Positions 1-29,665 of a stretch of 64,000 nucleotides of DNA are shown one piece after another. Below the pieces are notes generated by a model. It made no database searches, was not told the DNA's origin, and worked only from the letters and a program-made list of their open reading frames with translations. This stretch comes from Vitrella brassicaformis CCMP3155 (taxonomy: Eukaryota; Protista; Chromerida), in NCBI GenBank assembly GCA_001179505.1, contig CDMY01000603.1, positions 1-64,000 on the forward strand, in the 5' to 3' direction. Made by a program: the position numbers and the translations under genes. Positions within the stretch are counted from its first letter, which is position 1; each line of letters opens with the position of its first letter.

Positions 1-3000
1 ACAGCCGCGCGGAGGCGGCCGCTCTTGGCACCGTATCGGAGGAGGAAGGTCTGCCAGAAGTTCGCATCGCCACCGGGGTGCTTAGGGGTGTGTGAGTGAT
101 GTGAGGGGTGCATCCATCTGTGAATGCATTGGAATAGTGTCCTGGGCCTTGAGGTGGATGAGGATGGGGCGGCTGGTGAGCGGGAGCACGAGCATCACCA
201 CAAGAGCAAGAACAAGACGGACAGAGACTCAGGTCATCCCGACGGCTGGAAGAGGCTGTTCAAAGAGGAGCTCAAAGTCAAGCCAATCAACGGCACAGAG
301 AACGTCTCGCGTACGTCACGTGCGAACCACACACACCACACACAGACACACACACACACACAGAGCGACCAATTTGTTGTGTCCATGCCCGCCTGCAATG
401 CAGCCAAGCCGTCGCCGGGCCCGGTGGCCATCATCAACAGCCTCGACCTGGAGAACTCCATCAGGATGTTTGGCATTCTCGCCACTCCACCCGACCCAGT
501 TGGCGCCGTCGGGCCAAAAAGCATCCTCACCGCAACCAACACCGGACTCGTCTTGCAGGAACCCAAAAACGGCAAACTGGTCAGTCAGTCAGTCAGTCGG
601 CCCTTGTGGATGGATGGATACGGATGCTTGGCTTGCTTGGTGTGTGTATGGTATGTCCTCCCTCTCTCAGATAGCCGCTGAGCGTCCGCGTGAGTTTTTC
701 CTGCCGGTGACAGTGGGTGACGGCCGCAAGTTCCCTCTTGACGTGCCGGGCGAGTTGGAGGAGGTGGCCATCTTCTTCTCGCCCGTCGCGCAGTTCGACC
801 CCAACAGTGGCCACTTCTTTGTTGGCTACCTCTTCAACCAGTGCGAGCAGGTCATCGCCGTCTCCAAAACCAGTGAGCCCAAGTCTTTCACGCCAAAGGA
901 CTGGCTCATTGCACGATTCCCGGTGAGTGAGCATCCAGAACGCTGGCAGGCAGGCAGGCAGGCAGGGATGTTTGTGCGTTGTGTTTATGTCTGTGGTCAC
1001 TCAGATTGACGATCGGGAGCCGAGCACGATTTTCGAGGGCGCGCTAGCGGCCTTCGATCCGCCGGTCAACCGCACCATAACCGGTGCGATCCTCTCCCAG
1101 GTGCTGGCGGAAGTGTTTGGGCTCGGCCCCGACTCTGGCGAGTGCAAGCCAACCTTCTTCCTCTCTCACAACTCGCTCGGGGTCTCGTCAACACTCGTGG
1201 GATTCGCCTACAACGCATTCGCCTCTTTCGGTAGGCAGGGACACAACGACGAAACGCACCCCGACCACATGCGTGTGTGTGAGTGCGCTCTCTCTCTCTC
1301 TATGTGTGTGTGCGTGCGTGTGTATGTATGTATGTGTCACAGACCCGAGTCTGCTGATAGGCAGCCGCAGCATCTTTTTCGCGTTCGACAACGTGGAGTC
1401 GGTAGAAGATTTCGAGGCCTTCTTCGCTCCGTAAGCTCACTCACTCATCCAGCGGAGGGGATGTATAGAGCAGAGCAGAACAGCCATCGTGTCTTGTCGT
1501 GTCATGTGGTGTGTTGTCTGTCTTCCGGTCAGGGGCGAGGCGACCCCAGCCGACATCCTGACGCCAGGGATAACGGAGCCAGGCCCCCTCGAGCTGGAGG
1601 ACCTCTTCGACGCATCTATTGAGATTGTCGACAGCATTGGCTCTCTCTCACTGGTCCCATATGTGCAAGCCCCTGAGGATGAGGAGGTGCTGCTGGGACC
1701 AGTCGGCTCCGACCTGTTCGCCAGTTTTGACACTTCGGCCGATGAGGAGGAGGATGGTGGCGTGTCGCTGCTGCAGCAGGCCGCGTCAGACCTGGCGGGG
1801 TCTTTTCTCTACGGCTTCACCAACAGAGGACCGGGTATGGGACGGCGACAGACAGACAGACCCGCTGCATACATCCTCCGTCTCGTGTTATGTCTGCCCC
1901 ACCAACAGGAACATCTGGTGCGCAGCTCAACACGCCTCTGAACGGCATCTTCACACCCCTCGCGGCCTTCAGCCGGAGAACTTTCTCAACAGCAGCGACA
2001 TAGCGCGGGAGGCCGCCTTCAGGCGCATCGCAGACCCAAACGAGACCTTTGGGCTCGAGGATTCCATCGCCACAGAATTCGACGCATTCGACGGCCTACA
2101 GACGCTGTTCGTGCTCAAGCAGCTGCTGCTGACCTCTCTGCAGAGCGGGATTATCACTCTGGGGCGCAACACATACTTCCCAGTAGGCACACAGCGAGCA
2201 TGGTTGTAGCTACTGGGAATGCGATTCAGCCCGCCGGTCATGCGATGCGATGCGTTGTGTGTGCATTTCAGTCGGTAGAGTTTGACGAGCCTGACGAGGA
2301 TATGGCGGGCAGCCAACTGGGGGGCTTCCAAATAAACCTAGGTGATGACATCCTCCAGGTACGTACCTACCTCCAGACAGACAGACAGACAGACTGCCTG
2401 GTCAATCCGATTGACACACCCGCAGAAACAGGCAGTGCAGTGCACTCAGTGTGGATGGCATGGCATGTCATGTCATGTCATGTGTGTGACTCGCTCGGGC
2501 TGGGTAGGCCTGCCGTCAGACTGAGAAGCTGATTGTGTGCGCGTGGACGGGGTTCAGGACCATCAAAGACGCGAGCCTCGGTACGTTTGTACGCGCGTAG
2601 GTGAGATACGCAGACGCACGTGTACGTGCAGCTGTGCTCATGTGTGTTGATTGATAATCATTATATATAGACAAGCGTTGTCAGCAGGCCTTCATAGCGT
2701 ACGCGCAGCTGGACGTCTTCACCCTCTTCTCCCGTGCCTTTGACGCCCTCGTGCCGCCCCCGCCACAGACATCACTCACACCCATCGTCGTCCCGTCACG
2801 GCTCACACGAGCCATACTGGTTCGTATGCACATGTATGATACATACGTGTGGGAAAAGGTCTCATGCATCTCCCTGTCTCTCTGTGTTGTGTTGTGTGCT
2901 GCCGCCCAAGGGGTGGGACTTTGCCTTTCCGTCGGTGGCAGCGACGCCCCAGGGGGATGTGCTGGTCGGCTTCCAGGCGTTCGACAGGGCGGGCTTCCCC

Positions 3001-9848: not shown

Positions 9849-10312
9849 ATGGTGAATCTGATGAACACTCACCCGTCCGGCTATGGACAGGGATCTCGGC
9901 GATGGTGAGGGCCGGACGGGAGCGGACGGGACGGGAGGACAGACAGATCACACCGAGGGAGGCAAGGAGGGAGGCAAGGAGGGAGGGAGGCAGGGGAAGC
10001 CAACGGACACGACACAGCACCACAGACAGACAGACAGTCGTGAGACACGCCGCTCCCACTTGACGTGTGTTTGTCCTTTGTGTCTGTCTGTGTTCCCCCC
10101 TCTCGCTATATCAGCCGTGTGTGCAACAACCGACACGCCCTCATCCGCAAGTACAAGATCGACATCTGCCGGCAGTGCTTCCGCGAAAGGGCCACACAAA
10201 TCGGATTCCAGAAGGTACGCACGCATCTGATCTGATCGACAAACCGAACCAACCGAGCCGACACACTCTCGGGAGTGCGTCTGTCTGTTTGTTGTGTGCT
10301 TAGTATCGGTGA
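9849..10312 (+). CDS. RPS29: 40S ribosomal protein S29 (uS14), 3 exons (9849-9904, 10115-10214, 10304-10312)
   Basis: [54 protein letters not shown], with CxxC...CxxC zinc motif and a 9-nt terminal micro-exon TATCGGTGA. Confidence 0.97.
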
Positions 10313-16255: not shown

Positions 16256-18605
16256 TCACTTTTGTGAGAGTGGTGTGAATGTGAGTGACACGTATGGGTA
16301 GTACTCGCCGCCCTCCATCTCGTGACCCTCCGCACCACCAGCGCCACCTGGAGACACACACTCACACTCACACTCACGCACGCGCCACCATACCAGACAG
16401 GAAGTGTCTGTCTGGGTGTGGCTCACATGACTAAGTACGCACCTGCGTATGATTTGCCGAATGAGCCCGAGGAGGTGAAGAGTGTCTCGAGCTCCTGACG
16501 CAACCTCTTCTCGTTGCGGCCCGTCGGCTGCAGTCATTGCAATACACACAGATAAAGACACACCACGACAGACAGACATGCTTCATGTGATGTGCATTAG
16601 TCTGTGTGGTTTGTGTGGCGCACTGCAGGCCGTGTGTGTGTTGTGTTTACCATGAGAAAGAAGGCCGCGATCTTTGGTGGCAGACCGAACCGCAACACCG
16701 CCTCGACAAACACTCTGCATACACCAGTCCACGCACGGAGCGTCCCCGACACACGCATGTGTGCCTGCCTGCCTGCCTGCCTCTTAAAATAGGTAGGTAC
16801 CTTATTGCCTTGAGGTGAACCCATGCAATGAAGACATCTGAGAAGTTCGCCTCACACACGCGCTTCAGAAACGACTGCACCAAGCAACCACACACACACA
16901 CAGAGAGAGAGAGAGAGACGTCTGGTGTGACTGGTGGACGGGAGGATGCCTGAATGGAGTGTGCGCGTGTGTGCATCGCAATGGTGCGTGCCTCGTTTTT
17001 CTTGAGTTCTTGTTCGATGCGCGCCCGTTCGGTCTTGCGGTGGTTGTACGCCTCGACGGAATAGGTGAAGTCGCGCACTATAAACCTGACGCAAACAAAC
17101 ACACAGCACACGAACGAAGATGGCAAATGGAGAGGGACTGTGCGTGGCGGACTTTCCCCTCCCTCTCTCCCTCTCTTCACCCCTATATATTCACTTATTT
17201 ACCTGTTTTGTCTGGCGGTCGACTTGAAGTCCTCGGCGCTCTTCTTCATGACGACAACACGCCACAGCGTGTTGCCCTCGCGATCCTCAGGCGGCAGCTT
17301 CCTGCACACACATTGGCCACCCACACACATACACATACACATGGATGGATGGATGGATCCCTCTTGCTGTGCCAAGTTGCCTCCTTTCGCGACTGACTGT
17401 GAAGATCTCGGCACGACGTGTTCGTCGAGGCCTTCGTACTTCTCCAGCCACTCCTTGTCCTGACCCCTGCAGGCACACACGCAGAGACGTACACACGTAT
17501 CTTGATCTGATCTGATCTGATGTGTGTGCTGAGTGTGTTCGTTGATTGACAGACCTTGGCACGACGACCACGAGTGTGGTGAGGTACTCTGACTCGATAA
17601 AGTCGCTCTCCTTGACCACCTCGGGCGTCAACACGTCGATCAGGTCACGCTGCGACAGGTTGCCACTGATCGACACGCAAACACAACAACACACGGACAC
17701 CAACAAACACACACACACGGTAGGTACCGTGAGTGTGCGGACATCGATCTCCATCCATCCATCCATCCATCTGTCTGTTCCTGATTCCTGAGTGCGCACC
17801 CCTCCTTCTTGGCGACTTGTGAGGCCTGTTGTTTGAGGTCGTTGAAGGCCGCAGACTTGAGACGCAGCTCCTCGTCTATCTTGCCCACAGACTGACAGAC
17901 AGGGGGCGGGGCGGGGGGGAATCACATGCATCGCACACCACACCACACAGCCCGGGACACTTGTATGAGTGTGTGTGGGTCCCTCCTTGTCTCTCTCTGT
18001 CCATGTGGGTCGGTACTGCTAGTATGAGTTGGATGAGTTCGGTGACGTGTGTCTTCTTGGGGAACTTGGCCTCGTCCCACACAAAACGACGCAAATAGTC
18101 GTCAACAGTCGCTGATCACACACACACACACACACACGCGGACGCCACACACACACGTGTCACATAGATGGTATCCTCCCATCATTGCCGCGTACCAGTG
18201 GTTCGTTGTGCCATGATTTTGAATTGTGTGTTTGGGTCGATTTCGAGCAGCTGCCGCTCCACCCGCCTCAGGACGCTCTCCGCCATGGTGTCGTGCTTGG
18301 CCAACTCGTCCACCACCTTGATCAAACTATCAAACGTACCCACCTGCACAACCACAAAGAAACACACACAGAGAGACCCATGCACACACACATGCATTGC
18401 CCTGCCCTTGTGTTGTGTGCTGGCTGGCTCCTCTGTGTGTGTCTTTGTGTGTCTGCCCGGTGCCTTGCGTCACCTTGAGTGAGTCGGGGACGTCGAGGAC
18501 GAAAAGGTCTGATGCGAGTTGTGGGACGATTCTGCTCTTGAGTACGCTGAAGATGGAGTCGCGGCTCTCATCCTTGGAACTGCACGCAACTATCCAAAAC
18601 GACAT
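16256..18605 (-). CDS. VMA5: V-type proton ATPase subunit C
   Basis: LDVPDSLKVGTFDSLIKVVDELAKHD, RRFVWDEAKFP, GNLSQRDL, ESEYLTTLVVVVPR, VPRSSQ, FIVRDF, FSDVFIAWVHLKAIR, VFVEAVLRFGLPP, C-terminal EYYPYVS. ATG 18605; stop 16256-16258. Confidence 0.96.
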
Positions 18606-18823
18606 CGGTCAAGTGGGAGGGACTCTGCTGATTGATGAGGAGGGAGAGGGACGGAGGATGGGTGAGGAGATGAGTTGGACGCCAGGGGCTCTTGGAAGGC
18701 CGCTGATCTGCAGGTGAGGCCGGTGATCTACAGCTCCACAGGCCCTCTGGAGCAACCCGATATCAGGCTCGCCTCGCAGGACATTCCGTGAAACTGCTGG
18801 TAGAAAGAGAAAGGAAAAGGTGT

Positions 18824-20899
18824 ATGGCTGGCGCAGAGACGAGGGCCAAGGCTCTTGAGGCGCTCTCGGGTCTGTACTCGCGCTTTCAGCAGACTGCCGA
18901 CGCACTCAAGGAGAGCACTGAGGCGGCTGCCGCCGTGAGTGAGAAGGACATGGGCAAGGCCAAGGACAAGGAGGAGGGTGGTGACAAGAAGGAGGCTGAT
19001 GCTGACGCGGGTACTTACTGTACGGATGCATGTGAACTGTAGCTGGACGGTCTGCTGCATTTGTTTTGTCTACTCTGCTGGCTGAGTGGCTCCATTGAGT
19101 GTGTCAGGTCCTCCGAAGCGTCAGAAGGTGCGTGAGGCCGGCCTGGGGCTGGGCATAGGGCGTTTCGGGTTCAAGGAGCCCACCAAGGAGCAGGTACTTC
19201 ATATGCACTGCACTTGCACGCAGACGGACGCATATATATATATCCTACATGTGATGTCATGTCATGTGTCCGTGTGTGTGTGTGTGATGTGTGTGTGGTT
19301 AGTTGCGCGAAATGTTGATCAAGGAGGAGAAGCTCCGTTGGCACCTGGTAAGGGATATCTAACTCCCCTTTCTTTCTTCATTTTTCAATTCTTCTCAATT
19401 TCTCTTCTCATTTTGCTTATGTCTGCGCACATTCTCTGTTCCTCTTTTTTCTCTGCCGCGGATTGAAAGGCCACGCACGAGCGCATGAAAAACGCCCGTG
19501 AGTGGCTCGATGTGGCAGAGGAAATCCAGATACAGGCAAGTGATGTGCAGCTGGGTGGGGGGGAGATGGCGCGAATGCACTTGTTTTGAGTCGCGTCGTG
19601 TGTGGGATGGATGGATGGATGGTTGGGTGAGGTGTGTGCAGATAGTGAACGAGTACGGGTACGTTGGCAAGGTGAACGAGTCCTACGCGGCGCACCTGCT
19701 GCGCACCGCCCACGTCAAGTACCCCGACCTCAAGAGCATCTCGGTCTACGCGCGGGAGAACATCGCTCGCGACGGAGAGCTCAAGGCAACCACCAACGAA
19801 CCAACCAACCAACCAACGACCACACACACACACAGGAGATTTATGTGTGGTGGGTGTTTGGTGCAGGAGGGGCAGACAGCCCCGGATGTGCCTTTGCTGG
19901 ACCCTGCGGGTGCGCCCTGTCGTTTGTCGGAGCTGATCAAGGCCACGCAGCAGCGGGAGGGGGGCGGGGGGCCGCTCCCTTTCACACTCATCGTCGCCGG
20001 CTCGCACACCTGACCCCCGTTCCGGGCCAGTAAGCATGCTACTCACACACACACAGACAGACACCTATGAAGCAAGCCCGTGCGTACATGCGTCCGTCAC
20101 GTGTCCGTCGTCCTCGTGTGTGGCGCATCGCATCGCATCAGTCGTTGATCGCCTTAGCGCTATCAAGATGGCCTGGGGGGAGAGGGTGGCGTTTGCGATG
20201 ATATACATCAAGGAGGCGCACGCGGCGGACGTCTGGCCCATAGGCGATCACCTGACCATAGAGCGACCCAACGAACCCAAAAACAACGAGGACCGCATCA
20301 AGAGTAAGCCGCGCCATTAATGCACTGCACTGCACTGCTGGCCCCCTGTCTGTCTGTGAGTGTGTGTACGTTTGGCTGGTCCCTGGCCTGTGTATGTAGA
20401 TGCTCGCGATTTCCTTGACGTGTTTGGCAACTTCACCTGGCCCGTGTACATCGACACCGTAGCCAATGAGTTCGAGAAGGAGTTTGCACCATGGCCGTTC
20501 CGGTGAGGGAATCAGTGGGTGTGGTGTGCGGTGGGAGGGAGGGAGTGCACCCATCCATCCATCCATCCGTCCATCCATCCACCATGCCGTATGTGTGTGA
20601 TTTGGTCAGCTTCTACATCATCGACAGCAGCATGAAGGTCCTGTGGAAGGCCCAGCCCGTCGCAGGTACGGCCGTCAACAAACACAACACACACACACAC
20701 ACACACAAAGTATTAGAGGACACCATCTCCCTGCTTAAATGACTCAGTCCTGTCCTGTGCGGTGTGTGTGAATGTGTGTGTTGGTCTGTCAGATGAGTGC
20801 ACCTACGACACGACGGACAACCCCAACGGCGTCGAGGGCAAGATCAAGGAGCTCCTCGCCGCACACACAGACACACAGCAGGGCCAGGCGACATCATAG
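18824..20899 (+). CDS. Iodothyronine deiodinase-like selenoprotein (372 aa, Sec225 encoded by TGA 20011-20013), 10 exons
   Basis: Exons 18824-19010, 19108-19193, 19303-19347, 19470-19535, 19642-19785, 19867-20029, 20142-20303, 20400-20502, 20610-20665, 20793-20899 are all phase-consistent. Motifs GQTAPD, AGSHT-(TGA)-PPFR, IYIKEAHAADVW, YIDTVAN, APWPFRFYIID. SECIS downstream. Confidence 0.92.
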
Positions 20900-21031
20900 C
20901 TAGCTGTACCTGCGCCATCCATCCATGTGAGAGTGTCTGAGAGAGGCAGAGGGAGGGAGGGGTGTGTGTATCTGGCGCGTCACGTCACGTGTGCCGTGTG
21001 TGCGTGAGGGCGTGGTGCGGTGTGGGTGTGT

Positions 21032-21094
21032 GCGGCGAGTGACGTGGCGGCGGTGAAAGCGCATTTCTGCGCAGCTGCCCCACTGAAGTGCTGC
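21032..21094 (+). promoter_or_regulatory. Type II SECIS element in the 3' UTR of the deiodinase-like gene
   Basis: Helix I GCGGCG/UGCUGC; core G-UGAC (21039-21043) and UGAA (21084-21087); 10-bp helix II with one bulged C; unpaired AAA (21056-21058); apical mini-helix GCGCA/UGCGC closing UUUC. Confidence 0.88.
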
Positions 21095-21797
21095 TGACTG
21101 CCCAGCCTGCCTGCCTGCTGCTGCTGCACGGACACATGTGAGTGGTGGCGTTGGACTCTCTTCTCTCTCCTCTGCCTGCATGCCTGCCTGCATGGCTGCG
21201 TGTGCGTGGCGTGGTGCTTTTTAGTTCCAGGTTGGTTCGTTTTTGCGTATCCATCTATCTATCTATGTATCGTGAGTGTGGGTGTGGTGGGTGTGCATTT
21301 GTTAGTGAGTGGGATGAGCGTGAGCGGACGGACAGCCAGAAGGTCTGTTTTTTCGCAGCAGATGGATGGCTGCAAGCTTACCGATGGATGCATGGATGTG
21401 TAATGCATGTCGATACTTGCAGACATAGAAATAAACAGGTGGACGGCCTGCCTGTCTGTCTGTCTGTCTGACCGGTGTGTGTTGTGCTGCCAGCAATGGG
21501 TGAATGGATGGACCTGAACGAACGAACGAATCAAAGAACGAACGAACGAATGGATGGATGAATGTGGAGAAGACACCGAAAAGACTGTCCGAAGCCAGCC
21601 AGCATCAGCATTGTGCTGGGTTGATTGATTGCAATGAAGTCAGTCAACCAACGATTCGATCGAACGGCCATTTTTGCCGATCGCCTGCCTATCTCTCTCT
21701 GAAAAACAACCATACCATCCATTGCCATGCATTGCCACCAACACCCAACTACAGCCAACCAGTCTCAACACACGCACAGCACATGGATGGATGGCAT

Positions 21798-24700
21798 CTA
21801 AGCATTCTCCTCGTCACCCTCCTCAATGGTCTGGAACCGCACTCCGCCCACCACACTGCCGCCCAACCCCCACCCTCCCCCGTCTGCAGCACCACCACCA
21901 GCTGCTGCCGCTGCTGGACCACTACTCGATGCGCCGTTGCTGTGCGTGGGGTCTGTGGGTGAGGCGGATGCTGCGGCGGCGGCAGAACTGCTGCCAGTGC
22001 TGATGCGATACATTCATTACACAGACGCACACCACCATAGGTGAACGGGGGGGTGAATGTCTGAGTGTGTGTGTCTGAGTGTGTGTGTGTGTTGATCTCC
22101 CTCACCTGCTGCTGGTGGGTGTGTGGCTGGGGTGGTCTGGCTGAGGCATCCAAGCTAATGCCGGTGTCGACCTTCGCACCGGGTTGGTCACAAATCGCTG
22201 GCTCAGACTGGGCACTGATGTGGAATGGCAGACAACAACACAGACACAGACACAGATGTGGTGTGTCCGGTGTGCATGGGTGTCTCGTCTCATCGTAGGT
22301 ACCTCCGAGGGCGTATATGGTTGCGGACAGGCAGACTCCCGAGTTGGCCTCCTGCATCGCAGTCGTCACGCAGTCGGTCGTCAGGAGACGGCCCCAGCCC
22401 TTGCCGCTCCCACTGATCCAATGATTGGCAGACAGACAGACAGACGTGTGTGTGTGCCTCATTCCTTTCTTTGTTTCCCTCTGTTTTCGCACGCACTTCT
22501 TGATGTCCGATCCTTGCATGTCGCACGTCTGCACACACAGCAAAGGCAGGCAGCCAATGACTGACTGAATGGATGGTCGGTTGTTCCCACTTGTGCCCCC
22601 CCCTCCCTCCCCCCCTCCCTCCTCAGTGACTGACTGACGCACCTTGAGTACGCGTACGTTGCCTGGGGCGTCATTGGCCATGACGCTGAGCTCCAGCACG
22701 AAACACGAGTGCACCGACGGGGCGACGAGCTTGCCCATGTTCTCCGAAAACCTCAGGTAAACGCCAAGATGCGATTCGTCAACGGCTCTCTCCTGCACAC
22801 ACACACACACACACACCGTCTGCGTGTGTCGGTGATGTGGTGTCGTGTGGTGGCTCGGCTGACCAGTGAGAGCTGCAGGCCGAATTCCCCCCAGTAGAAG
22901 AGCTCTGAGCGCAACTCGCCTGCACCACACCAGACACATACACGCGACACTCAGACGTCTGTCTGTCTGTCTGTCCATGTGTGTGTGTCCTTCCCCTCCC
23001 CCCTGGCTGACCTAGGTACGGTGGCAGGTCCGTGAACCAGCAGTGCACTGTGGCCGGCCCCTGCAGGTCTCTGGGCAGCATGATGCGGCCGCGACCACTC
23101 GACACGCCGTCCACATGCAAGGCTATCATGCCATACTCGTCAAACCAATCTGCATACACACACACACACACACACAAACGGGCACCAAGCAAGAACCGAT
23201 CATCGACCGACCATCTGTGCACATGTGTTCCCCTTTCTTGCCGGCCACTCCACTTACAAGGGTAGTTCTGACGCACCATCTCAATGGACACACCACCTCC
23301 ACTAGGCACCATGCCCACACCTGCATCGCCTCGACCGTCCTCCCCACCACCATCGCCCTCGGCCCCCTCGTCCCCACCCTCCCCCTCGCCGTCATCAGCT
23401 ATCTCGCCCTCCTCGATCTCATCTCCCTCCTCCTCCTGCCCCCCACTGACGTCGCTCTTCTCACTGTCAGTGTCGGGGCAGGCGGCAGCCTTGATGAGGC
23501 CGATGGTGTCGGCCAGCTGGCGGTAGTGCGTCCGGTCGGATTGCGATCTGAAGTCGAAGGTGAATGACGGCCAGTAGGGCTCGGGGGCGAGGGTGAAGCG
23601 CCAGTCAAGCTCATCGGCATCAGCGGTGGCATCCTCAACATCGGCATCTGGCCGCTCCTGCTCACTCTCTTGGTGGGCCTGCTCGTGATCTTGCGTGTCG
23701 GCTGACAGAGATCCACGACATACAGAGATGGGAGGGAAGGCACACATGAATCAGAGGTGGAGGGGCATTGTGTGTGCTGTGTTGGTTCTGTTCTGTGTCG
23801 GTGTGGCTGGCTGCTCGCTCACCTTGTCGGTTCTCGCCGTCGCCGTCAGCACCTCCATCGTCCGCCTGCTGCTGCCCCTGCGGCGCCCCAGCTGGCCCAC
23901 CCGGCAAGTCGTCACGTGTGCCCAAGTCATTGGAGTCATCCCCCTCCCCGCCATCACCCTCACCCTCCTCCCACTGGCCACCCTCAGCGATGAGTGCACG
24001 GGCCATCTTCCTCTCGTCGACCGCCCGTTGGTCCTCCTTGCCCATCATGCGTCTCTCACGACGGGCCTTCTTGCGGGCCATCCTGTCGATGCGCCACTGG
24101 TGGCGGTTGGGGTCCCACGATGTTTGGATGTACTCGGACCTTGCTGAGATGGACGGGGGGAGGCGCCAGCCGCCCACGTAGATCGGGCCGTCAGGATCGT
24201 CATCGCTGCTCTGCTCGTACTCGTGCGTGTCGTAGAACTCACGCTTGGCAATGGCCTCGGCCGACTCGACGATTGGCTTCTTGCGGGGGGGCGGGGGCAG
24301 GCCTGGTGGTGCAGGGGCTGGGGCTTTGGCAGACGGCTCACTGGGGCTGTGCAGAGGGGGCACACGGGGCGGCGACTCAGCGGGCGGCTGCCACTGCTGC
24401 ACCTGGGAGACCTGGTCGAACCCCAACTCGGCTGCATACGGCAGTGCATAGGCCGATCCATAGGCTGCGGCGTAGGCTGCAGACGACGCGGCACAGGGCG
24501 ACGCATATGAGGCATAGGAACCGGCCGAATAAGACGTAGCGTACGCCGATGAGTAAGACTGTGCGAAGGGGTCGGGCGGGAGGCTGCCCGTGAGGCCGGG
24601 GATGGGCAGCGGACCGGTCGAGTTGGTCTGGGCCTCGGTTGTGGCCATCTCCTTTGGCGGCTCCCGGGGCTGCTGCTGGTCTTCGACGACGGTCTGCATC

Positions 24701-27179: not shown

Positions 27180-29665
27180 ATGATTCCGAGAGGAGAGGCT
27201 GTGAGGCCGCCCCAGTGACCTGGGGATGAATGCAAAAACCAGCCAGCCGCCCTCTCGACCTTCTCGTCCAATCTGTCATCCTCAGCCAGCCTGTGGAAAG
27301 AACAAGACCACGACGTTGAAGAGAACGCAGCTGGACCAGGAGACCACATCACGGCCACAGCACATGGTGACTGCGAGAGACGAGCATCGGTCGCATCAGC
27401 CACGAGCACAGCCCCGACAGAAAAACAGACGGGCATCCCAATCCACCCCAGCAGCAAGGGAGACGCCGTAGGAGATGTCAACACAAGAGAGCCCTCCAGC
27501 GGTGAGCCGCGTCGTGAGGAGCGCGCGATAGCGGAATTAGTTACTGAATTCAGGTAAGTCATCAGACCAGGAAATATATCTCATACACGGATACAAATGA
27601 CTGTCTCTCCTGTCTCCTGGCCTGTTCAGGGAGGCGGCAGGCTATGAGACAGGTGTCTATGAAGCCGCTCACGAAGAGTGGCCCACGACGCTCGAGTACA
27701 AGACGATTAACCACCCCGACGGCAGCACGGCAGAAGTGCTTGTCGGTGCCACGTTTCAGCCGGAGCCGCTTTGGATGACTAAGAGACGCGTTTTCATATT
27801 CACAATGCAGCAGCTAGCGAGAAATTCAGCCATCGCCATCGTACTCGTCGGCTGTACTAAGATGTATGCATACTGCTGTACGTCGAGCATCGTTGGGCCG
27901 GTGTCTGATGTATTTCGCCGCATTATATTGGTCCTCGCCTTACCTTTCTTCGCCGTGCACATCACGGACGGGACCGACTGGCAAAAAATGATATCGCGGC
28001 TGAAGAAGGAGTGGGTAACTTTTGTTCCAACAATGGCGCTCAGTCTCTTTACCTCGATTGATCATCAGCTTCATTCTGACAGCCAAGAAAGGAAAAAAAT
28101 CATTACCCCGATCGTGTGGAGCTCAGCTTTTGCAGCCGTCTGTGTATACTTCCGTCGCGCTGCGGGGTCGCTGGGTATCAGGGCCAAGAGAGAGTATGTT
28201 CTAAAGGCCACAGCGCCTTTCGTGCTGGCGTACACAATGGGCCTAGTTTGCGTTTATGCCTTATCTCCAAAGTACGCTGCTGCAGCATCTACTGATAGGG
28301 ATCGATTTTTTATGGCTGTCATATACCTGACCGTCTTCCTGCCCCCTATCGGACTCGTCAACAAACTTGTGCGGTCACTCAAAGTACGAATTGACGCACC
28401 GAGACACAGCCACAGAATGACAGCGGACTTTTTTCTCGTGATCCAATGTGTATTCAAGAGGGGCCCCCAACATGCAACTCGCTGCTTATTGCGATGCCAG
28501 CCATGGTGTGTGACGGTGCGGGTGCGATGGCCTGAGACCCCATGATAAGTCCTTGCATGGATCCATGCACCGTGTGTCAGACGTACATTCTCTTTCCGAG
28601 AATGCTCCAGTCCGAGGCCGTCAACCTGAGCAGCAAATTGGTCTACAGCGTCGTCATGTCGCTCTTCGACCTGATAATGGATATCTCGTCCCCCTATGGT
28701 GCATGCGTCAGCCATGAAAAGATGAGTGAGTTGTTCTCCAATCATTTTTGTTCCCTTTTGAGTGCATTTCAGCGATCCTGCTGTATCTGCGGGCCAAGAA
28801 GCTTGTCAAGGCTCGCTGCAAGAAAAGAACACCCACAGCTCATCCCCTGACTAGCATCGCGCTGGCCGCAACCAAGGAGGAGGCTGTCAGTGGACCACCC
28901 ACGCACAAGGACAACGATGCTACGGAGAGGCAGCACGACAAGAGAAATGACAGCCATTTGCTGAGACGTCAAAGCTCCATTATGAGCGCAGCGCTCTCTC
29001 TCAGAGGCACAAAGCCGGGTCTCAGTCCGACTGGAGGGCTGCAGTCGGCCTTGGCGTCACTTGAAGTGTCTCCAAGGTACCTGAGGCCGTGACACATCAT
29101 GATACACAGAGATACTATATTTATGCTCTTTTCTCCAAAGGTGCCTACGTTCGCTGTGCGACCAAATCCACATCTGGTCCAATTGCGAGTTGGTGGCGCT
29201 TCTCTTTACCAACCTGACTGTGCTCACGGCCCAAGCTTACGCAGGCGCACCATGGCAGCAGGTTGTGGAGGGAGGCATCGGTTTGGTGTTACTGGTGGCT
29301 ATCGAGCAGCTATTCGAGCTGTGCGTGCTGTGTGTCATGATGAGATGGAACAACCTGCCCATGCTGACATCCACTCGTGAGAAAGGCGTTCTTCGCTCCA
29401 GGATCCTGATAGTGCTCATGGCCGCCACTTCCTTCCTGGTCAGGTGCACCTGTCGACTTCTTTCTCACTGCACTGCATGTGCCTCTTGTCTGTCTGTCTG
29501 TGTCTATATCCGTGTGTGCAGCATTTTCTCATGGCTGCCATTTCTCCACTTGTCTGTCCAGGGCGCAGTCAGCCGCACAGTTGCAAAGCCCCGACTTATC
29601 GGGCAATCGGAGTCGTCCGACCCGGCTGCTCTCTGCCCATATCTTTCTCCTTCCCTCTAGAATGA
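27180..29665 (+). CDS. Multi-pass membrane protein of unknown function; exon 1 carries an in-frame TGA at codon 13
   Basis: Several hydrophobic segments (AIAIVLVGC, IILVLALPFFAV, FVLAYTMGLVCVYAL, FFMAVIYLTVFLPPIGLV, TYILFPRMLQ, GIGLVLLVAIEQLFELCVLCV, RILIVLMAATSFLV). Donor at about 27553 and subsequent exons are phase-consistent where traced. The start is uncertain. Confidence 0.65.

Follow-up and report, generated by a model that had tools for sequence, protein, structure and literature searches.

Deiodinase-like selenoproteins with type II SECIS elements are known from Dictyostelium and other organisms (PMC2375036). A G directly before the SECIS quartet has been found in all Ostreococcus tauri elements but one and in some elements of zebrafish and nematodes (PMC2375036), as well as in most elements of Chlamydomonas and Ostreococcus and, among sponge elements, in 12 of 21 (PMC3473315). 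In the sponge Amphimedon, the GUGA...AA pattern is common to many selenoprotein genes of this one organism (PMC3473315). A literature search returned no paper linking SECIS elements with Vitrella, and no relevant paper on selenoproteins with Chromera.

The window analysed here, a stretch of 64,000 nucleotides of the Vitrella brassicaformis CCMP3155 genome, contains a hairpin (Table 1) that the initial annotation had read as a type II SECIS with a GUGA core. The present analysis leads to the same reading: with a probability of roughly 0.9, this hairpin is the functional type II SECIS of the deiodinase-like gene located upstream of it, for which selenocysteine (Sec) insertion is predicted. Direct reading of the forward strand showed that the 63 nt of the hairpin agree letter for letter with the earlier transcription, and its start at 21032 lies 132 nt past the TAG stop codon at 20897-20899, as first annotated. 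The description of the core as the less common GUGA variant stands in part: GUGA is present, but it is rare only in animals and is usual in Ostreococcus, Chlamydomonas and a sponge (PMC2375036, PMC3473315).

Table 1. Positions of the predicted selenoprotein gene, of the putative SECIS and its parts in the window, and form of the hairpins found at orthologous loci (positions of the latter refer to the locus itself).
Feature	Position	Strand	Remarks
Deiodinase-like selenoprotein gene (predicted)	18824-20899	+	10 exons, 372 codons, two GC-AG introns; stop TAG 20897-20899
Exons 1-5	18824-19010, 19108-19193, 19303-19347, 19470-19535, 19642-19785	+	Gene model
Exons 6-10	19867-20029, 20142-20303, 20400-20502, 20610-20665, 20793-20899	+	Gene model
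GC-AG introns	19536-19641, 19786-19866	+	Donors GCAAGT and GCAACC; spliced out in contigs of all four runs
In-frame TGA (predicted Sec codon)	20011-20013	+	Motif AGSHT-U-PPFRA; single in-frame TGA of the gene
3'UTR, minimum extent	20900-21562	+	Spliced contigs, which cannot fix the poly(A) site
Extended stem carrying the putative SECIS at its tip	20944-21180	+	Roughly 240 nt; GA/GT-rich arm with CT/CTG-rich arm; whole-UTR fold
Putative type II SECIS hairpin, whole	21032-21094	+	Sequence, MFE and partition-function folds
Helix I, 5' strand GCGGCG	21032-21037	+	Partner 21089-21094; pair probabilities 0.83-0.99 in the whole-UTR fold
5' core AGUGAC	21038-21043	+	Unpaired A21038 and G21039, quartet U21040-G21041-A21042, then C21043; fits the UGAN half of the consensus
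Helix II, 5' strand	21044-21054	+	C21048 bulged; partner 21074-21083; 10 pairs, probabilities 0.95-1.0
Unpaired apical AAA	21056-21058	+	13 nt past the quartet
Apical mini-stem GCGCA/UGCGC with UUUC loop	21059-21072	+	Type II feature; pair probabilities 0.75-0.99
Helix II, 3' strand	21074-21083	+	MFE and whole-UTR folds
3' core UGAA	21084-21087	+	Fits KGAW; G21085 and A21086 predicted to form tandem sheared pairs with A21042 and G21041
Helix I, 3' strand UGCUGC	21089-21094	+	Whole-UTR fold
L006/L007 hairpin			AUGA-C, 12 nt, AA, 4-bp mini-stem, 10 nt, UGAA-G; layout block for block that of the window hairpin
L057 hairpin			Type II, AAAAA
L059 hairpin			Type I
L069 hairpin			Type I with AAA
L086 hairpin			Type II
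L063 hairpin	1140-1195		GUGA-C core
L001, L072, L074/82/85, L061 and L018 hairpins			Core and helix II, without apical AA in the MFE fold

The model of the host gene was built by reading the three frames together with GT/GC-AG intron boundaries; its product would be one 372-residue Sec protein, and its in-frame TGA precedes the SECIS core by 583 nt in the spliced transcript. The active-site pattern GSxx[U/C]PPF is found around this codon, and past it the protein contains IYIKEAHAADVWP and APWPFRFYII. Exon 7 alone matches the Pfam T4_deiodinase family (PF00837) with an E-value of 1.4e-4 and 21.7 bits, a score that lies under the gathering threshold (27 bits) because exon 7 comprises only 53 residues. 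For orthologues, the C-terminal halves reach 31-65 bits with the same family, above this cut-off, and the spliced host protein matches those orthologues with E-values of 1e-56 to 1e-73.

Homologues were collected by phmmer with exon 7, by word-index searches and by one metagenome scan, which gave 89 homologous loci (numbered L001 to L089). Residues from about 85 to about 345-359 of the window protein align with marine metatranscriptome contigs (E-values 1e-28 to 1e-73), and the alignment with a large group of soil and peat metagenome loci (within L010-L088) starts only from residue about 168. The homologues of this soil/peat group are shorter, all have the motif GSYT-TGA-PPF and lack a region of about 85 residues upstream of the deiodinase domain that is common to the window protein and to the marine-protist orthologues; this group is probably bacterial.

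Transcript contigs from four public runs, belonging to three studies, were aligned over positions 18600-22600. Every run contains a contig in which the ten exons are connected as modelled, including across the GC-AG introns, with all nine introns removed, and the TGA is kept in the spliced contigs of each run. These contigs are unbroken from 20790 across the hairpin to 21562 (contig X1), 21550 (X2) and 21313 (X7), and contig X6 extends beyond. Since contigs without the nine introns derive from spliced RNA, the hairpin lies within the mature 3'UTR, and polyadenylation upstream of 21032, the objection foreseen in the initial annotation, is contradicted by spliced contigs that reach 21313-21562. 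A convergent gene is located on the minus strand at 21345-22600, with introns at 22215-22302 and 22413-22496 (CT..AC joints 22214/22303 and 22412/22497). Transcript contigs of this gene reach down to about 21345-21605, and contig X6 spans both genes. The 3'UTRs of the deiodinase-like and convergent genes may overlap downstream of the SECIS.

When the segment 21020-21105 was folded with RNAfold, both the MFE and the centroid structures were the described hairpin (-40.3 kcal/mol, z = -2.06, 7 of 200 shuffles as good), and every pair claimed in the initial annotation was reproduced. In a fold of the whole 663-nt 3'UTR, all 21 pairs of the hairpin are retained with probabilities of 0.75-1.0. Helix II is formed by 21044-21047 and 21049-21054 with 21074-21083; above it, the nucleotides G-AAA are left unpaired before the mini-stem in the MFE fold, and below it, the internal loop that leads from helix I to the quartet is small (2 nt vs 1 nt). 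An alternative pairing of the 5' strand of helix II with the CUG repeats at 21117-21130 was ruled out from the partition function: the canonical helix II pairs have probabilities of 0.95-1.0, and the CUG-repeat pairing is therefore not competitive.

The features that are expected of a eukaryotic SECIS were then compared one by one with this hairpin. The quartet of a SECIS is directly preceded by an unpaired purine, usually an A and in some lineages a G; here it is preceded by G21039, itself preceded by A21038. Helix II of SECIS elements is about 9-13 bp long with little bending, and in the window hairpin it comprises 10 pairs and one bulged C. Conserved unpaired adenosines (or CC) stand atop helix II, and the AAA of the hairpin is unpaired in both the MFE and the centroid folds. 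Type II elements have an extra helix, or mini-stem, above the adenosines; a mini-stem of 5 bp is present here. U21040 stands opposite A21087 and not opposite a second U, U.U being the more usual pairing at the equivalent position of SECIS elements. For the core, the published consensus combines UGAN/KGAW with non-canonical AG-GA pairs (PMC3753652), and the hairpin agrees with it, with UGAC on the 5' side (21040-21043) and UGAA on the 3' side (21084-21087), G21041 and A21042 coming to stand opposite A21086 and G21085 once helices I and II are formed. The allowed distances are 10-13 nt from the quartet to the AA and 15-39 nt from the AA to the GA (PMC2375036); in the hairpin they are 13 nt (21043-21055), which is the upper limit of the permitted range, and 27 nt (21058-21084), respectively. 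The core, spacing, apical adenosines and type II mini-stem claimed in the initial annotation are thus all present in the sequence and its folds.

Searches with covariance models were less favourable. The Rfam 15 models, to which the initial annotation had referred as a check, gave no SECIS match with cmscan, either over the whole window at the gathering thresholds or at E<=10 on slices of 601 nt and 96 nt, these slices matching only the spurious adapt33/SCARNA2 (E about 3.5). This negative result at the hairpin is weak evidence, because the same models also miss nearly all orthologue elements: SECIS_1 (RF00031) matches one of 14 orthologue loci (L069, 2003-2058, 26.5 bits for a gathering threshold of 35), and this match coincides exactly with the independently called L069 hairpin. 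The authors of SECISearch3 likewise state that elements particular to a lineage, for instance those from Ostreococcus, are absent from their consensus model (PMC3753652). A single-sequence covariance model (R1, from L006/L007) placed the hairpin fifth in the window, with 11.5 bits and an E-value of 1.2, after low-complexity GUGUGC...GCAC partial matches, and retrieved one other orthologue element only (L072, E 2.3); its ranking carries little information.

The expectation by chance was estimated with a generic descriptor that was not tuned to the hairpin (RUGA-N, then AA after 10-13 nt, a mini-stem or loop, a complementary strand with at most two mismatches and one bulge per side, NGA and helix I). 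Six sites were found in the window on both strands, vs 5.55 +/- 2.4 in dinucleotide shuffles of 2-kb blocks; this number is no higher than in shuffles, so most descriptor sites are noise. The sites at 10309 (+), 48482 (+), 48925 (-), 22191 (-) and 28657 (-) were rejected as chance, their number being that expected from the shuffles. One of them, 28610-28657 (-), is the only other site of high quality (AUGA...AA...GA with 11 helix II pairs); it is also attributed to chance, its fold having a z of +0.2, and it is antisense to an apparent plus-strand coding stretch (MLQSEAVNLSSKLVYSVV...). For descriptor sites with at least 11 helix II pairs, the quality class of the 21032-21094 hairpin, the expectation is 0.18 per 128 kb. 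On a single strand over the 663 nt of the UTR, this comes to about 0.001 sites of equal quality, the figure for sites of any kind being about 0.03. With another scanner, which relies on constrained folding, the core at 21039 came out as the sole canonical SECIS candidate in the 3'UTR.

Hairpins equivalent to that of the window, of which the initial annotation had spoken for orthologues, were found in marine-protist loci. Indeed, orthologues of this group with long enough 3' regions have RUGA...GA hairpins 25-150 nt past the stop codon. These are canonical, with apical AA, in five lineages (L006/L007, L057, L059, L069 and L086; Table 1). Others, namely L074:1724-1767 (= L082, L085), L001:1160-1215, L063:1140-1195 and L072:2308-2356, are without unpaired AA or CC on top and have UUG, CA or A/GA instead; in L001 the core is doubled (AUGAAUGA opposite UGACUGA). 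These AA-less hairpins may be non-canonical SECIS apices or artefacts of the MFE fold. The best RUGA...GA hairpin of each 3' region was compared with those of 100 dinucleotide shuffles: p was at most 0.03 in 9 of 19 lineages, and Fisher's combined p vs the shuffles was 1.4e-8. The same test applied to the first 300 nt of the window UTR gave p = 0.03. In a MAFFT alignment, the diverse orthologue hairpins were not in register; a subset of seven sequences aligned the cores, with 4-5 helix II pairs consistent by column. The metagenome relative L089 (ENA ERZ893784 contig k147_1776964, 1-2104), which shares 86% identity with the window across exons and introns, has 23 of 23 identical nucleotides in the 5' portion of the hairpin, its contig ending inside the hairpin at 21050. 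For the remainder of the hairpin in this close relative, a search with a spurious ORF over 20903-21193 (-) returned no homologue.

These results bear on the rival explanation that survives best, namely that the hairpin is a chance product of a GC-rich sequence in a structured and microsatellite-rich UTR, the true SECIS being located elsewhere in the 3'UTR or having a form invisible to the descriptor. The genome is GC-rich and 86-nt shuffles of the UTR themselves fold strongly (mean -33.5 kcal/mol), so that the z of the hairpin is only -2.06; descriptor sites in the window are no more numerous than in shuffles, and the site at 28657-28610 (-) is well paired and yet clearly due to chance. The negative Rfam result, and the several orthologue hairpins without apical AA, which point to non-canonical forms in the family, would also be in keeping with this explanation. 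Against it stand the very small number of hairpins of equal quality expected in the UTR (about 0.001, as given above) and the lack of a canonical competitor, the next RUGA...GA hairpin (core 21314) having a helix II of 6 bp and no apical AA. Moreover, the architecture of the window hairpin is that of the L006 element (RUGA-C, 12 nt, AA, mini-stem, 10 nt, UGAA-G). A chance hairpin is accordingly considered improbable, and the hairpin is best read as the SECIS of the deiodinase-like gene.

The hairpin stands at the tip of a much longer stem (Table 1). Indeed, the segment 20912-21182 folds as one hairpin of -134.7 kcal/mol (z = -3.60, none of 200 shuffles as good). The outer arms of this stem are complementary low-complexity tracts, GAGGGAGGGAGGGGUGUGUG... 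on one side vs ...CCUGCCUGCCUGCUGCUG / CUCUUCUCUCUCCUCUGCC on the other. This single long fold, together with convergent-gene transcript contigs that lie near or overlap the 3'UTR, would suit an explanation in which the hairpin is above all the end of an inverted microsatellite structure of about 240 nt with another role (mRNA stability, control of antisense overlap or Dicer-like processing) and in which the SECIS motifs are incidental. However, an extended helix I does not conflict with function as a SECIS and occurs in the orthologue L006 too, and the exact UGAN/KGAW core, the spacing of the AAA and the mini-stem, all downstream of a Sec gene, would be left unexplained; in addition, the two roles are not mutually exclusive. 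As a replacement for the SECIS reading, this explanation is therefore given very little weight. If the hairpin is a SECIS, the outer stem could have a role of its own, for example in keeping the SECIS folded or in shielding it from the overlapping convergent transcript. A more far-reaching version would be that a GUGA-core type II SECIS is displayed here in an unusual manner, on a hairpin of about 240 nt with complementary microsatellite-like arms, that the outer stem is a selected, lineage-specific part of recoding, and that several marine-protist orthologues use SECIS elements without AA or CC. This version appears rather unlikely; if it were true, the AA/CC-less orthologue hairpins would widen the accepted SECIS consensus.

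The need for a SECIS can be examined separately, from the sequence that follows the UGA. In more than 70 homologous loci in which the codon is readable, including every Sec-type homologue, a TGA is kept at the Sec codon. The motif of the Sec-type homologues is GS[HYWVFIG][ST]-U-PP[FY], with the variants -U-PPL, -U-LPL, -U-PPM and -U-PPI, and their frame is open up to a normal stop about 125-140 codons past the TGA. A small AT-rich group (L026, L036, L038, L052, L060 and L062) has Cys at this position (GSYTCPLYR), which constitutes a Sec/Cys pair within the family. The relative L089 has the same gene structure as the window gene and keeps the TGA. Past the UGA, its exons are 96-98% identical to those of the window, without gaps, vs 77-89% with gaps for the introns, and the 148 codons compared differ by 13 synonymous vs 3 non-synonymous changes, without any indel. 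The stop codon of L089 comes one codon earlier (TGA TAG vs TCA TAG in the window). Judged from these codon changes, the sequence past the UGA is under purifying selection as protein, which would require recoding and hence a SECIS. The gene model, the homologues and the comparison with L089 thus agree with the proposal of Sec recoding made at first, that is, with an in-frame, conserved UGA that is apparently translated through at the deiodinase Sec position. That the UGA is a genuine stop, in a truncated or decaying gene for which the hairpin would be a relic or irrelevant, is extremely unlikely, as the TGA is conserved in more than 70 homologues with an open frame beyond it, the changes relative to the 86%-identical L089 are 13 synonymous to 3 non-synonymous with no indels, all downstream introns are spliced in frame and the catalytic domain (EAHxxDxWP, WPxRF) lies downstream of the UGA.

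The way in which the SECIS would act, that is, its kink-turn geometry, protein binding and Sec insertion, can be proposed by analogy with established eukaryotic Sec decoding. In the mRNA, G21041.A21086 and A21042.G21085 would form the tandem sheared pairs of a kink-turn at the base of the 10-bp helix II, which would be capped by the unpaired AAA and the 5-bp mini-stem. An SBP2-like SECIS-binding protein could bind this core and recruit the Sec-specific elongation factor with Sec-tRNA, and the ribosome would then decode the UGA at 20011-20013 as selenocysteine in GSHT-U-PPF instead of terminating. Since the cis-element is in agreement with the UGA, with the translated domain downstream of it and with the expression of the gene, the case for a genuine selenoprotein can be regarded as complete. 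The finding leaves the knowledge of Sec decoding unchanged. It provides a well-documented GUGA-type SECIS from an alveolate alga, which could be useful for training lineage-aware SECIS models, as the Rfam models miss the window element and nearly all orthologue elements.

In comparison with the known systems, (i) the Ostreococcus/Chlamydomonas-type SECIS is alike in its unpaired G before the quartet, its type II mini-stem, its apical adenosines and its location in the 3'UTR of algal selenoprotein mRNAs (PMC2375036). It differs in that the host of the window element is a chromerid alveolate and not a green alga, that the mini-stem is of 5 bp only vs the long mini-stems noted for Ostreococcus elements (PMC2375036), and that helix I extends into a long stem, making a hairpin of about 240 nt. 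(ii) The deiodinase-like selenoprotein of Dictyostelium belongs to the same protein family and is likewise a protist deiodinase homologue; however, the AUGA core of Dictyostelium elements follows a conserved UGUA, whereas AG precedes the UGA in the window, and the mini-stem of the Dictyostelium deiodinase-like SECIS is extremely long, whereas that of the window is short (PMC2375036). (iii) The vertebrate DIO1-3 proteins belong to the Pfam family of which the host protein is probably also a member, with Sec in GSxxUPPF, and their SECIS elements are alike in function, kink-turn core, helix II, apical adenosines and location in the 3'UTR. Their core is AUGA and that of the window is GUGA, and the Rfam model SECIS_1 (RF00031) gives the window element no score. 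(iv) The GUGA_AA elements of the sponge Amphimedon have the same GUGA...AA primary pattern, but a metazoan host and different gene families (PMC3473315); by analogy, these sponge elements speak for a core variant that is characteristic of the organism and not of the gene. In summary, SECIS elements of the GUGA type with a mini-stem are already known in green algae and sponges, and the element of the window is a well-formed, ordinary example of them.
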